Below, in pieces: positions 24,337-61,954 of a DNA stretch of 64,000 nt. The position numbers and the translations under genes are program-made. Where the stretch lies: sequence record NC_042116.1; one strand, given 5' to 3'. The notes under the pieces are model-generated. The model had not been told where the DNA came from. It searched no databases and worked only from the letters and a program-made list of their open reading frames with translations. Each line of letters begins with the position of its first letter. Within the stretch, counting starts at the first letter, position 1.

Positions 24337-24897
24337 ATGAACGAAATTATTTTAATATTTTTAATGTTCAGGCAAAATGCAAAATTGCTTAAAGAACATG
24401 TAATAAATGATAGTGTTTTATCATGTAAATTAAAAAGAAAAGAATTATTATATTTGAAATATAAACTTTCATCTATTAGTACTGAAAATTATAATATTAT
24501 AAAATCCATATGTACTGATTTTGACCGTTTTGATGTATTTCGCATGAACACCAACCGACCATCTGGGTTTAATTCTGGTGCGGGTACTAGGTTTTTAATG
24601 CATCCAACTACAGGTGAATATTATAAAACTATTGATATTCGCTATGGTGATTTCTTTTATCCAACTGTATTACATGATACAAAGATGGATATATTTTTTA
24701 TACTTGATGAATATTATACAATAGTTGATGATGTTATTATTTTTAAGGATGAAGATCATGAGTTCTTTTTTGGTATCGTACAAGAATTAAAAAATGCAAA
24801 AGACAAAGAAGCACAAATACTAAAGCAACAATTATTACAAAAAGAAGAACTTAAAAAAGAAAGAAAGAAATTAGATATATTATCAAAATATTCATAA
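24337..24897 (+). CDS. hypothetical protein, paralog family A member 4
   Basis: FRQNAKLLKEH...LKYKLSSI...DFDRFD; ends ILSKYS like ILSNYL of member 3. Confidence 0.65.
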   Translation: MNEIILIFLMFRQNAKLLKEHVINDSVLSCKLKRKELLYLKYKLSSISTENYNIIKSICTDFDRFDVFRMNTNRPSGFNSGAGTRFLMHPTTGEYYKTIDIRYGDFFYPTVLHDTKMDIFFILDEYYTIVDDVIIFKDEDHEFFFGIVQELKNAKDKEAQILKQQLLQKEELKKERKKLDILSKYS

Positions 24898-24905
24898 GGA
24901 ATTAA

Positions 24906-25766
24906 ATGGAATACAATGGAAAATTTCCTCACCAAAAAATAGATTTCAACTCAAGTACAGTCATCGTTATAAATGGTGACTGTACTTCTGTATTAAAAGA
25001 GTTATACGAACTTGGATTTAAATTTAACACCACAATAACATCTCCACCATATGCAGAACAACGTAAAGACGTATACGATAGTATTACACCTACCGATTTT
25101 CCATTATGGTATAAAAATATCAGTACTGATATCATGAATGTTACACATGATGATGGTTCTTATTTCTTTAATATAAAAGAGCATGTTGATAAAGGTAAAC
25201 GTGATATTTACGTATACAAGACCATCATTGATATTTCTGATGATTATAATTGGAGTGATGAATATATTTGGAATAAAACAAATCCATTCCCTACTGGTGC
25301 TAAAACTCGATTGAAAGATGGATTTGAAAGAATATATCAATTTAACCATACAACAAAATATAAATTCTTTCCAGATGAAGTAAAAGTACAAAGTACTTCA
25401 AAGTACTTAGAAAGTGAAAAGAAAAGAAAAAACAAAGGTGAGCACAATGTCAATAATGGGTCTTCAATGAACATGACTAAACGTGTTGCTGAAGATATGG
25501 TTAGACCAAGTAATGTGATTACGTGTAGTACTAGTAATTTAAATATTGGTCATCCAGCAGTATTTCCTATTGATATACCAAACTTCTACATAAAGCTAAC
25601 AACTGAAGAAAATGATTGGATACTTGATCCATTTGGTGGTTCAGGGACAACTGCATTAAGTGCAATTCAATTAGGTAGAAATTGTGTTCTAATAGAAAAA
25701 TCTGAACAGTACTATCAATTAATAATCGAAAGACTAAATCAATTTGGTCGGGAGAATTATCTATGA
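24906..25766 (+). CDS. beta-class N4-cytosine/N6-adenine DNA methyltransferase
   Basis: INGDC, ITSPPY (motif IV) before HPAVFP and ILDPFGGSGTT (motif I). Confidence 0.9.
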   Translation: MEYNGKFPHQKIDFNSSTVIVINGDCTSVLKELYELGFKFNTTITSPPYAEQRKDVYDSITPTDFPLWYKNISTDIMNVTHDDGSYFFNIKEHVDKGKRDIYVYKTIIDISDDYNWSDEYIWNKTNPFPTGAKTRLKDGFERIYQFNHTTKYKFFPDEVKVQSTSKYLESEKKRKNKGEHNVNNGSSMNMTKRVAEDMVRPSNVITCSTSNLNIGHPAVFPIDIPNFYIKLTTEENDWILDPFGGSGTTALSAIQLGRNCVLIEKSEQYYQLIIERLNQFGRENYL

Positions 25767-29968: not shown

Positions 29969-30502
29969 ATGGGTTCAACCTATATAGTACTTAAAGAATA
30001 TCCAGTTCAAACTATTATCAACTTAATTGATGATACTAATAAAATTGAAATTGACGGAATGATAATACCAGTTGATAAAGAAAAAATGCTAGCATTTAAA
30101 AATAGTACTAAATGTTTAACATGTGACATTGAAGCAACTCATTTCTCATTAGAGAAGATAGCTAATTGTACACATGGTTTATATGGTAATTATCATTTTA
30201 ATTTATACGGTTCACGAAATAATAATAAAATATTATTAACAGTAGACCATGCTATATTAGCAAAAAATAATGGTGAACATCATCATACAAATTTTAATAC
30301 TATGTGTGTATCATGTAATAATCGTCGAGGTTCTAAGTTTGAAAATATAGATGACTTTATTACATTTAGTAAACTTAATCCAATTTCAAAGCATATATCT
30401 GATACAATTGCGTATAAAAAGAAGAAAGAACTTTTTGAAAAAACGGTACAAAAATCTCATGTACAATTATATTACAAAAATCGCAATAAAAATCTTGCAT
30501 AA
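29969..30502 (+). CDS. HNH-domain protein
   Basis: CLTC...LTVDH...NFNTMCVSCNNRRG. Confidence 0.75.
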   Translation: MGSTYIVLKEYPVQTIINLIDDTNKIEIDGMIIPVDKEKMLAFKNSTKCLTCDIEATHFSLEKIANCTHGLYGNYHFNLYGSRNNNKILLTVDHAILAKNNGEHHHTNFNTMCVSCNNRRGSKFENIDDFITFSKLNPISKHISDTIAYKKKKELFEKTVQKSHVQLYYKNRNKNLA

Positions 30503-30965: not shown

Positions 30966-31232
30966 ATGGCTTGGTCAGAAAGTGATGTTTATTATCGTAT
31001 CATTCGTATGTCGGATGATCCACAACTATTAACTATAGTAACTATGCAAGACTTCGATGAAGTTGATTATGACCATAATCGTTTTTTGTGTGCAAAAGGA
31101 ACAAATGAACGTTTATATTTTAGTACTGAAGAAAAAGCAATTAAATTCTTAAATGAAAATATAAAATTTGAAAATATCGATCCTGATTATTTAAATAAAC
31201 ACCAAAGGTTAAATGATATTTTTTACAAATAA
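30966..31232 (+). CDS. hypothetical protein
   Basis: Start moved to ATG 30966 after GAGGG. Confidence 0.65.
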   Translation: MAWSESDVYYRIIRMSDDPQLLTIVTMQDFDEVDYDHNRFLCAKGTNERLYFSTEEKAIKFLNENIKFENIDPDYLNKHQRLNDIFYK

Positions 31233-31233
31233 A

Positions 31234-31262
31234 TGAAACACATTAAAAAAATATGGTATAAT
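31234..31262 (+). promoter_or_regulatory. TGAAAC-N17-TATAAT extended -10 promoter (phage class)
   Basis: TGAAAC ACATTAAAAAAATATGG TATAAT; same layout at 39665, 45859, 61926. Confidence 0.7.
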
Positions 31263-31267
31263 AAGTA

Positions 31268-31735
31268 TGAAGAACCTAAAAATGGTTCTTTATACAATTC
31301 TGATTGATCCGTAATACGGAATAGTTTAATCCTGATCCTATCGAAAAGTAGATGGCAGATGAGTAGTTCAATCAGTACGAGTGCAGAAGAAACCCGTTAG
31401 GAGATGGCATAGTTAGTACCACCCACGGCAATGCGGCACTATAAATACGCCCTTGATATGAGCGTACTAGATAGACATATGAGATGCATACTCACCTATT
31501 AAAAGGGAGATATTCTAAGGAATATCAATAGTATTTGTTGCTGAATTAGCAAGTACTATATGCGAAGGAATGAGAAATCTTCGACCGTTGTATGCGACTG
31601 TAGTAACTGGAAACCGGACAACCCGCCAGTGTTTACTACAAATTTTAGACAATAAAGATCCGTCCAAAATTTGAGTGAAATCTACAAATTCAGAGGTAAG
31701 ACTACCACCGTCAGATATTATTCTGACTTTTTTTT
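31268..31735 (+). ncRNA. candidate large structured non-coding RNA (~470 nt)
   Basis: Bounded by promoter and terminator; no ORF of 60 aa or more apart from a doubtful GTG ORF at the 3' edge; ~38% GC by hand count versus roughly 25% in flanking genes; ten or more stems. Confidence 0.7.
31710..31735 (+). terminator. rho-independent terminator
   Basis: GTCAGA-TATTAT-TCTGAC + T8. Confidence 0.75.
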
Positions 31736-31889
31736 CGTTCCCCTTTTGTGGGGGGATGCAAATGGATCAACAAACCCCGTCAGTATTACTAACTAAAAAG
31801 TACTTAAATATAATAATAACTGAATGGAAATTGTTCGAGTTCTTTAGAACGAGAAGAATTGAACATTCTTGACTAACGGAGTTAGGCAA

Positions 31890-32264
31890 ATGGAATTATC
31901 AGAAAATAAGTATTTTGAAAATGTAATGAGTAAGTACTTTTTAATTTTAATTGAGCAAGACCTGTATCAGTACAGGGGAAATACAATATTCATAGATAAA
32001 TCATCTAATGATGATAGAACTCTTGGCATTTATAATGCCATGTGTGATATGGCATATATTGGTGAAAATATTGTATGTGTTAATTTTGATAAAGAATTTC
32101 CAATTAAACACTTGGATAAATTGCACTTTTTTATTGGAAAAAATGCATATTACTTAAATCCAGTACCATGTGATTTTTTGTTTATTTTTGACTCAGTAAA
32201 AAATCATGAAGAATTAAATAAAATCATTAATTTTTACAATCCTAAATTTATATTTTATTGCTAG
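31890..32264 (+). CDS. hypothetical protein (possible degenerate P-loop fold)
   Basis: Start at ATG 31890 after GGAG; GNTIFID...CDFLFIFD strand pattern. Confidence 0.6.
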   Translation: MELSENKYFENVMSKYFLILIEQDLYQYRGNTIFIDKSSNDDRTLGIYNAMCDMAYIGENIVCVNFDKEFPIKHLDKLHFFIGKNAYYLNPVPCDFLFIFDSVKNHEELNKIINFYNPKFIFYC

Positions 32265-32751: not shown

Positions 32752-32780
32752 AAGGACACATTTTTGTGTCCTTTCTTTTT
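32752..32780 (+). terminator. rho-independent terminator
   Basis: AAGGACACA-TTTT-TGTGTCCTT + TCTTTTT. Confidence 0.8.
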
Positions 32781-39664: not shown

Positions 39665-39693
39665 TGAAACGCCGCAAAAAATTGTGGTATAAT
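39665..39693 (+). promoter_or_regulatory. TGAAAC-N17-TATAAT extended -10 promoter
   Basis: TGAAAC GCCGCAAAAAATTGTGG TATAAT. Confidence 0.7.
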
Positions 39694-61553: not shown

Positions 61554-61928
61554 ATGATACCAAAAACCAACAGTACTGAAATTCAAGTAGATGTATTAAT
61601 AAAAATACGGGAAGTTTATGAATTTGATTCTGAACTTTCTGATAGAATGATATTGATATCTATTTTTGATAATTACAGAACTGGTGGTGGTCTTAGGTTG
61701 AGTAAGTTGGGGTATAATATTTGTACTGAATATGATTTGTATGAGTTTACCCCTATTCCTATAAAAAAGGAAGACCGTAATTCTATGGTTTACACTTCTT
61801 TAGATCGTATTTGCACTAGCCCCTATTATATAAAAGGGGATGTTTTGTACTTATCTGATGAACTTGTTATGGCACAACTAACTTTTTGTAGAGATAATTT
61901 TGTAAAATTATTTTTAGCATTTATGTGA
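61554..61928 (+). CDS. hypothetical protein
   Basis: Start moved to ATG 61554. Confidence 0.65.
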   Translation: MIPKTNSTEIQVDVLIKIREVYEFDSELSDRMILISIFDNYRTGGGLRLSKLGYNICTEYDLYEFTPIPIKKEDRNSMVYTSLDRICTSPYYIKGDVLYLSDELVMAQLTFCRDNFVKLFLAFM

Positions 61929-61954
61929 AACATTAAAAAAAATTCTGGTATAAT
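61926..61954 (+). promoter_or_regulatory. TGAAAC-N17-TATAAT extended -10 promoter
   Basis: TGAAAC ATTAAAAAAAATTCTGG TATAAT. Confidence 0.7.

Follow-up and report, generated by a model that had tools for sequence, protein, structure and literature searches.

A probable new family of large structured RNA, recurring along jumbo-phage genomes and present in bacterial islands

What fills the gap between the end of gene g158 (31232) and the start of g161 (31891) in the Yersinia phage fHe-Yen9-04, an Eneladusvirus jumbo phage of 354 kb? The window analysed here is a stretch of 64,000 nucleotides from its record, NC_042116.1 (record coordinate = window coordinate + 62000). An earlier note, made from the sequence alone, had proposed that this gap holds a candidate novel large phage non-coding RNA (ncRNA), and comparison with relatives bears this out: the gap is occupied by an RNA that is conserved and structured, has its own promoter and matches no curated family. 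We consider it very likely that this is a real new family of large structured RNA. What the RNA does is argued further below, where our tentative choice is a leader acting on the gene that follows it.

The case for an RNA is carried by covariation among relatives, which the earlier note had named as a check and which proves to be strong. Across 20 collinear homologues the 101 proposed pairs were 90.9% paired, compared to 37-42% in slid controls; double changes were seen at 49 pairs against 10-19 in the controls, and the covariation score was 0.347 against 0.06-0.08, a value reached by none of 500 shuffles. A covariance model (R1) of the 5' domain only, 171 positions long, gave a single match in the window (31298-31447, 154 bits, E 1e-30). 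The same model recovered all five copies of the RNA in fHe-Yen9-04 and gave 74 matches in 0.8 Mb of loci, with zero matches in about 25 chance-match control loci and in the jumbo phage PA5oct. When the 5' domains of 65 distinct sequences were aligned with it, 97.2% of cells were paired against 25-47% in slid controls, counts which lean toward structure because the alignment was fitted to the helices of the model. The pseudoknot PK1, which is absent from the model, is still 100% paired in these 65 sequences (UA 45, AU 13, CG 6). Among 66 sequences PK2 is canonical in 460 of 462 cells, with three to four pair types at five positions, and P12, P13 and PK3 are canonical in 66/66 at every pair.

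The folded strand is the plus strand, since on it G-U pairs outnumber A-C pairs three- to four-fold (93:24 and 37:13). Folding energy alone does not decide the strand: the plus strand folds at -127 kcal/mol, z = -4.9 against shuffles, and the minus strand also beats its shuffles (z = -4.1). The GC-enriched segment described earlier is present, with a GC content of 0.40-0.425 at 31300-31600 and about 0.20-0.34 in the flanks. The coordinates of all features are collected in Table 1.

Table 1. Promoter, helices, pseudoknots and 3' features of the RNA, in window coordinates except for the last row.
Feature	Position	Strand	Remarks
Promoter	31234-31262	+	TGAAAC (-35-like) 31234-39, 14-nt spacer, extended -10 TGGTATAAT 31254-62
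5'-terminal hairpin	31265-31295	+	GTATGAAGAACC / GGTTCTTTATAC; sequence variable, stem compensated among copies
5' domain	31300-31447	+	P1-P5, PK1, invariant junction CACGGCAAUGCGGC
P1	31300-06 / 31369-75	+	CTGATTG/CAATCAG
P2	31308-12 / 31316-20	+	
P3	31332-34 / 31356-58 and 31338-42 / 31351-55	+	loop GAAAAGUA
PK1 (pseudoknot)	31363-65 / 31376-78	+	GUA/UAC, around 3' strand of P1
P4	31381-84 / 31437-40	+	
P5	31394-97 / 31425-28	+	arm swappable
Central hairpins and junctions	31446-31586	+	P6-P10, invariant GAUAGACAUAU
P6	31446-50 / 31462-66	+	
P7	31481-83 / 31491-93	+	two candidate pairings
AAGGGAG	31503-09	+	invariant
P8	31509-15 / 31520-26	+	
P9	31528-33 / 31554-59	+	apical part holds PK2 5' strand CUGAAUU 31541-47
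P10	31563-67 / 31579-83	+	
3' core	31587-31693	+	PK3, P13, P12, P14, PK2 3' strand
PK3	31587-91 / 31618-22	+	GUUGU/ACAAC; ACAAC strand inside P13 loop; CAACCCGC invariant
P13	31606-10 / 31626-30	+	
P12, long range	31599-603 / 31682-86	+	UGUAG/CUACA
P14 module	31641-50 / 31662-71	+	conserved loop AAUAAAGAUCC
PK2	31541-47 / 31687-93	+	CUGAAUU (5' strand) / AAUUCAG (3' strand)
Direct repeat 1	31702-31716	+	CUACCACCGUCAGAU
Intrinsic-terminator-like hairpin	31710-31735	+	GUCAGA-UAUUAU-UCUGAC then U8; optional module
Conserved 3' module	31740-31786	+	C-run/G-run hairpin 31741-45 / 31751-55; contains AUCAACAAACC
GGGGGG-AUG	31750-58	+	starts short open reading frame, about 10 codons
Direct repeat 2	31773-86	+	AACCCCGUCAGUAU
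Domain 3 hairpins	31834-31885	+	31834-53, 31854-70, terminal CUAAC-GGA-GUUAG 31873-85
fHe-Yen9-04 copies (record coordinates)	24461-25149; 93235-93895 (window copy); 174228-174920; 260348-261029; 334670-335218	+	

Most of the stems read earlier from the window alone stand up among the relatives: the 5' hairpin, CTGATTG/CAATCAG, TCCGT/ACGGA, GTGC/GCAC, TACGC/GCGTA, GATATTC/GAATATC, ATAGTA/TACTAT, CGAAG/CTTCG, ACTGG/CCAGT and AATTTTAGAC/GTCCAAAATT. In TGAG/CTCA the inner three pairs covary and the outer pair is canonical in only 23/64. The long arm proposed at 31599-640 is kept only as ACTGG/CCAGT; its outer pairing TGTAGTAA/TTACTACA is canonical in only 20-32 of about 60, and its TGTAG pairs instead with the distant CTACA at 31682-86 to form P12. 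No GCAA-tetraloop hairpin is formed, CACGGCAAUGCGGC being a near-invariant single-stranded junction. The secondary structure as a whole is a working model in which the details of the P5 arm are tentative and the stems of P14 are taken from sequence and the conserved module; a first registration of the P14 hairpin was only 52% paired, was rejected and is not used as evidence.

Near-invariant blocks are common to all copies of the RNA, namely GAAAA.GUA, AGAUGAGUAG, CAGUACGA, AACCCGU, CACGGCAAUGCGGC, GAUAGACAUAU, AAGGGAG, CGACCGUUG, CAACCCGC, GGGGGGAUG and two YCGUCAG repeats. Around them the periphery is mobile. The P14 hairpin, with its loop AAUAnAGAUCC, is inserted at a different point in the sister types C, D and 121Q. 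Two alternative P5 arms (31398-31423), the short GGAGAUGGCAUAGUUAGUACCACC and the long AGAGUACUAGCAGUCAUACAAAGAGACAUAAGACUACGAAUC, are distributed as a mosaic among the sister clades, which suggests exchange of modules among copies. With about 66 distinct sequences and several well-supported pseudoknots the family lends itself to structural work.

The stretch is very probably not a coding region. Two tiny coding sequences, g159 (31571-31674) and g160 (31757-31872), are annotated inside it in the record, and related records carry similar tiny hypothetical open reading frames (ORFs) on either strand. The second codon of g159 is a stop in phages GAP32, XbC2 and CBB. The frame of g160 shifts between copies while the nucleotides are conserved, so that its peptide is not conserved. 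The short ORF that opens at GGGGGG-AUG likewise has no conserved peptide, its frame moving by one nucleotide between copies. The longest ORF of the core has a median of 36 codons and no fixed position. The earlier reading that no credible ORF is present thus agrees with the relatives, in which neither g159 nor g160 is conserved as a reading frame, and these two and their counterparts are very probably annotation artefacts, not genes.

Upstream, the TGAAAC and TATAAT boxes of the earlier note are present, and the same architecture, TGAAAC + TGnTATAAT, stands upstream of every RNA copy; transcription would start near 31268-70. An internal TATAAATA, once proposed as a second, late promoter, is not conserved as such, most copies having AAUAAAG there. 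In phage CBB a predicted promoter class with the -35 box TGAAACG and a classic -10 box has 18 examples, and the motif also occurs in GAP32 (PMC5259590). Further promoters of the same class, TGAAAC-N14/15-TGGTATAAT, lie in the window at 39665-39693 and 61926-61954, both on the plus strand. Several copies of this promoter class have a palindromic spacer, e.g. CAGAAC-TAAAA-GTTCTG in XbC2, and this might be an operator.

The extent of the element differs from that first proposed. The intrinsic terminator at 31710-35, a hairpin followed by U8, is indeed present in the window copy, and many copies have a canonical terminator, but it is absent in the sister types C, D and 121Q. A single unit of about 470 nucleotides (nt) ending at 31735 therefore does not describe the element; conservation and covariation run on to 31885, which gives an element of about 31269-31885, or ~620 nt to the last hairpin and ~520 nt from the start to the second repeat. 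A short form ending at 31735 is possible. Beyond the terminator all copies keep the C-run/G-run hairpin, the GGGGGG-AUG, the motif AUCAACAAAYC and the second repeat. In the C-run/G-run hairpin the only changes are from C to U opposite an invariant G, which points to pairing at the RNA level on the plus strand. The terminal hairpin is canonical in from 46/52 (outer pair) to 52/52, with UA, AU, GC and CG swaps, and the start codon of g161 at 31891 lies 5 nt past it.

On several independent branches among 64 copies, a change in one direct repeat is matched by the identical change in the other (C:C 30, U:U 34; at a second position C:C 56, U:U 8), and in the island copies described below GUCAG has become GACAA in both. 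A mutual-information scan of all columns found no complementary partner for either repeat within the RNA. Judged from these sequence changes, the coupling may hint at competing pairings.

How widely is the RNA distributed? By BLASTN the stretch is present in 62-71 jumbo-phage records, where it is almost never an annotated feature. Identity is 92-95% in Eneladusvirus, 82-90% in Mimasvirus (GAP32, CBB, XbC2), about 75% in the Salmonella phages 7t3 and Munch and about 77% over the core in Asteriusvirus (121Q, PBECO4), and it is weak in RaK2/K64-1; the better-matched genomes show three to five matched places per record, the RaK2 group a single one. Several loci per genome were also found in a scan of IMG/VR with a conserved 21-mer. 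A degenerate pattern, GACCGTTG-N-CAACCCGC, gave mostly chance matches and was used only after profile filtering. In every genome inspected a syntenic "empty" gap of 0.6-0.75 kb is filled by the RNA. This RNA, which has no Rfam family, goes without annotation in some 70 GenBank jumbo-phage genomes or is entered there wrongly as tiny ORFs. Few large structured RNAs of unknown function exist, and every new class of them has led to new biology.

A profile search recovered the five fHe-Yen9-04 copies, all on the plus strand and each alone in its intergenic gap. They are spaced by 69, 81, 86 and 74 kb, with a wrap-around gap of 44 kb, and the spread of the gaps is below random (0.2-0.4% of simulations); in a related genome the copies stand at 13, 70, 150, 233 and 312 kb. 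The copies form old clades that are syntenic across genera, and within a genome they are about 60-70% alike with no homogenisation. Across genera the core is 88-95% identical, and the flanking proteins there share only about half of their residues. The family is unusual in that each genome of the RaK2/121Q/GAP32/Eneladusvirus clade retains three to five such old copies at even spacing; the Asteriusviruses 121Q, PBECO4 and G17 have four. Each of the five fHe-Yen9-04 copies is followed, a short distance beyond the end of the element, by the start of a gene in the same direction; copy 3 and the methyltransferase gene g241 form a lone plus-strand unit amid minus-strand neighbours. The junction GGCAA-AUG is kept in several other copies despite unrelated downstream genes. 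No conserved partner protein gene was found near the copies, whose upstream and downstream genes are mutually unrelated.

No known family accounts for these sequences. Rfam 15 at its gathering threshold matched no family in the whole window, GOLLD, ROOL, RNase P, transfer-messenger RNA (tmRNA) and introns included, and at E <= 10 the interval 31100-31950 and 12 loci with other copies gave only scattered unrelated sub-threshold matches on either strand. The novelty suggested by the earlier note is upheld in this way. Its further suggestion of a diverged GOLLD or ROOL relative is not, as these models detected nothing even at E <= 10 in six copies tested. An intron is also argued against by the arrangement of the copies, each with a promoter of its own and flanked by complete ORFs that are unrelated. 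Resemblances seen by eye to conserved regions of RNase P, the sarcin-ricin loop, group II domain 5, the 16S 3' end and the ColE1 origin sequence found no support from models or covariation and were dropped. Among the papers searched, none describes this RNA.

In its size, its many conserved helices, its covarying pseudoknots and its lack of coding capacity the RNA resembles the large ornate ncRNAs. Like GOLLD and ROOL it is phage-borne and several hundred nt long with many conserved helices and pseudoknots; unlike them it has three to five diverged copies per genome, not one, and is contiguous with the start of the next gene. GOLLD and ROOL often adjoin tRNA genes, whereas ARAGORN found no tRNA or tmRNA anywhere in the window.

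Transcribed ORF-free regions of a few hundred nt have also been defined by RNA-seq in PA5oct (ncRNA001-004), a jumbo phage described as related to the RaK2/121Q/GAP32 group, where ncRNA001 and ncRNA002 each make up 1-5% of phage reads (PMC7318152). With nhmmer these two showed no significant similarity to the present RNA, and they were not matched by the covariance model; since they are not homologous they give no expression evidence for this family. Both are GC-rich and ORF-free (L205, MK797984, 8263-8498 and 21951-22401) and may be a separate class of jumbo-phage RNA.

Copies of the RNA are also found in bacterial chromosomes. The scans of genomes and metagenomes used one exact 19-base pattern, and the spread of island copies given here is accordingly a lower bound. 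Among representative genomes, one scan turned up intact copies on the chromosomes of Serratia. In these islands a large serine recombinase gene stands at dapE-arsC, the RNA follows about 320 nt later on the same strand, variable defence cargo comes after the RNA and a small resolvase gene marks the end of the island. The cargo of one Serratia island comprises an AEP-reverse-transcriptase protein and a second reverse transcriptase, and that of the other a Hachiman-type HamA, a helicase and AbiGi. The phage-type promoter (TTTGAAACG ... TGTGCTATACT) is kept in the two Serratia island copies whose upstream sequence was read, and these copies are only about 70% identical to any phage copy. In E. 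coli 2/5426 complete genomes have a copy; the island inspected adjoins ffs and carries a broken tyrosine integrase, DUF4326, DUF488 and dual-OB genes and a small recombinase. The tree places the island copies of Serratia and E. coli at two separate points. In a metagenome-assembled genome from the Enterobacteriaceae a copy lies at the border of an element, flanked by thiM and a gene for a CI-like repressor. Plasmids were searched and no RNA copy was found.

The RNA is cargo of these islands and not part of their backbone, because relatives of the recombinase at the same dapE-arsC site in Yersinia, Pectobacterium, Pantoea and Franconibacter lack a copy. A relative of the recombinase on a 353-kb contig proved to be bacterial and not from a jumbo phage. 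An intact RNA with a phage-type promoter is thus found as cargo in mobile chromosomal islands of the same host group, in Serratia together with known defence genes, and the question is raised whether defence or hitch-hiking islands borrow the cis-acting RNA of the phage to sense or exploit infection.

What, then, might the RNA do? The explanation we favour, tentatively and from sequence and gene context, is a cis-acting 5' leader cassette that gates read-through into the downstream gene; both this regulatory action and any signal behind it we infer. The conserved folded core (31300-31693) would be followed by an expression platform ending at the start codon of the next gene, made up here of the intrinsic terminator, a C-run/G-run hairpin hiding a G6 run like a Shine-Dalgarno (SD) sequence, the AUG with its ORF of ~10 codons, and three hairpins. 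Depending on its state, the core would let RNA polymerase and ribosomes continue into the downstream gene, here g161, or hold them back. Bacterial islands would have taken over the cassette in full, and infection would then turn on their cargo or cause it to be treated like phage genes. Read-through transcripts do appear to matter, given covariation that continues past the terminator to a hairpin just before g161 and the kept GGCAA-AUG. Old, individually syntenic and non-homogenised copies behave like cis elements evolving with their own locus. A leader would further explain the co-orientation with the next gene, that of copy 3 with g241 included, and the position before island cargo: in the L251 island and the E. 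coli island the RNA, with its phage-type promoter kept, immediately precedes cargo genes that run in the same direction. Riboswitch and T-box leaders are likewise promoter-proximal and co-directional with the next gene, with a terminator and/or an SD-hiding hairpin, a short leader ORF and many sister copies evolving with their own locus, and here the hairpin over G6-AUG is found in all copies and the terminator in some types. Several points weigh against a leader. Sister copies, and even orthologous ones, are followed by genes that are unrelated to one another, unlike riboswitches and T-boxes, from which the RNA also differs by the missing terminator in some sister types; in the Serratia island at L252 the next gene is on the opposite strand. 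The core, at >450 nt with at least three pseudoknots, is far larger than known riboswitches and leaders, its sensor part exceeding that of any known leader two- to three-fold. A relocating peripheral module and swapped arms are more typical of free-standing three-dimensional RNAs, and the even spacing along the genome is left unexplained.

An alternative is a trans-acting, free-standing ornate RNA of about 0.45-0.55 kb, terminated or processed, which would work away from its gene: it might form an assembly, with proteins or of RNA alone, act as a ribozyme, or be a decoy for a host or phage factor. Copies in islands would in that case serve against the phage as decoys or poison subunits, or belong to a counter-defence cargo. 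The earlier note had read the RNA in this way, with a speculative role as scaffold, decoy or sponge for host defences that target RNA. We find this alternative possible but rather doubtful from the sequences at hand. It would suit the dense pseudoknotted fold with near-invariant purine-rich junctions (GAAAAGUA, AGAUGAGUAG, UACGA, GAUAGACAUAU, AAGGGAG, CAACCCGC) amid variable but compensated peripheral stems, and the relocation of P14 and the shuffled P5 arms are as in large ribozymes and ornate RNAs. The own promoter, the protective 5' hairpin, the canonical terminator of many copies and a core so much better conserved across genera than the flanking proteins fit as well. A consistent 3' end signal is lacking, however, with the terminator missing in several types and covariation reaching the next gene; five long-diverged, individually conserved, evenly spaced copies on one strand are unusual for a trans-acting RNA, and no conserved partner protein gene lies nearby. 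The even spacing is instead what an origin-type element would offer, in which promoter and structured transcript mark or prime phage replication through an R-loop or pre-primer, the five copies being five origins and the island carriers being amplified, perhaps packaged, on infection. By analogy with known origins this is conceivable, and we rate it as improbable. Phage T4 has at least five early origins, of which oriF and oriG consist of a phage-specific promoter with a sigma-70-type -10 box and a persistently annealed transcript forming an R-loop; the T4 origins share no motif, an A+T-rich unwinding element immediately behind the promoter is required, and no particular sequence is needed for their R-loops (PMC3016281). 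In CBB a region with many genes for DNA synthesis is preceded by many promoters of the TGAAACG class (PMC5259590). The present element resembles oriF and oriG in its promoter, TGAAAC-N14-TGGTATAAT, and in its several sites per genome. A cis element would also explain the independent evolution of the copies and the capture of one copy by at least two unrelated islands, which carry recombinases and no replication genes of their own. ColE1 RNA II is a structured pre-primer of roughly 550 nt; the RNA shares with it a structured form, a length of about 0.5 kb and a G-run, here an invariant G6, and an element of this kind, acting in cis, could be borrowed by other replicons. On the other side, where T4 origins have their A+T-rich element the 450 nt after the promoter are here the most GC-rich and most self-structured, and conserved. 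The region around the repeats is C-rich, not G-rich (GC skew -0.09), the terminator precedes the G-run in the window copy, and the cumulative GC skew takes no turn at the locus. RNA-type covariation over 620 nt exceeds the needs of a primer, and the relatives of the island recombinase do without the RNA at the same chromosomal site.

A reading in which there is no RNA at all, but small proteins (g159, g160) or a repeated DNA-level site for recombination or protein binding with stem-like palindromes, is very improbable. The two annotated coding sequences, the identical changes in the two repeats, which crossover or recognition sites would also show, and the folding of the minus strand are compatible with it; the stop in g159, the shifting frame of g160 and the absence of a fixed core ORF are not, and long-range and pseudoknotted compensatory pairs with an excess of G-U over A-C are not expected of double-stranded DNA sites. 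Processive-antitermination RNAs such as HK022 put also stand between promoter and terminator, and the RNA would like them act in cis on polymerase; put RNAs are about 70 nt with two stem-loops, and there is no resemblance to them in sequence or structure. Returning to a cis-acting cassette, the leader and origin proposals may be drawn together in a new kind of "infection cassette", which we hold to be unlikely in this full form: a 0.5-kb pseudoknotted RNA at five evenly spaced sites that would prime or mark replication, or license polymerase and ribosomes only when the cell is infected, captured at least twice by defence islands so that the phage amplifies or switches them on, with the direct repeats as working parts of the switch or of primer transfer.

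Some further observations concern the neighbourhood of the copies. The dapE-arsC sites (loci L251, L252 and L256-L262) hold serine recombinases that are 48-54% identical and overlap the end of the arsC-family gene; their cargo is variable, with HamA and helicase, AbiGi, AEP-reverse-transcriptase and reverse-transcriptase proteins and CI-like repressors, and dapE-arsC is a conserved hotspot for the integration of defence islands. Serratia sp. L9 (NZ_CP192591; L209:3380-4000, minus strand) has a decayed copy of the RNA without the 5' domain, with its 3' repeats lost and CAACCCGC now CAACUCGC, fused directly behind an ORF of 200 codons that, taken from its sequence alone, is probably a recombinase fragment. 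This copy looks like the remnant of an older island beside the current integration site.

In the window an HNH endonuclease gene, g156 (29969-30502), lies upstream of the RNA, and in several phages such a gene stands one or two genes upstream of the type-A copy, immediately upstream in XaC1; no intron-like arrangement was found for the HNH genes near type-A copies. Further downstream, after g162, a perfect 9-bp hairpin at 32752-32773, AAGGACACA-TTTT-TGTGTCCTT, has T-runs on either side and reads as a two-way intrinsic terminator.

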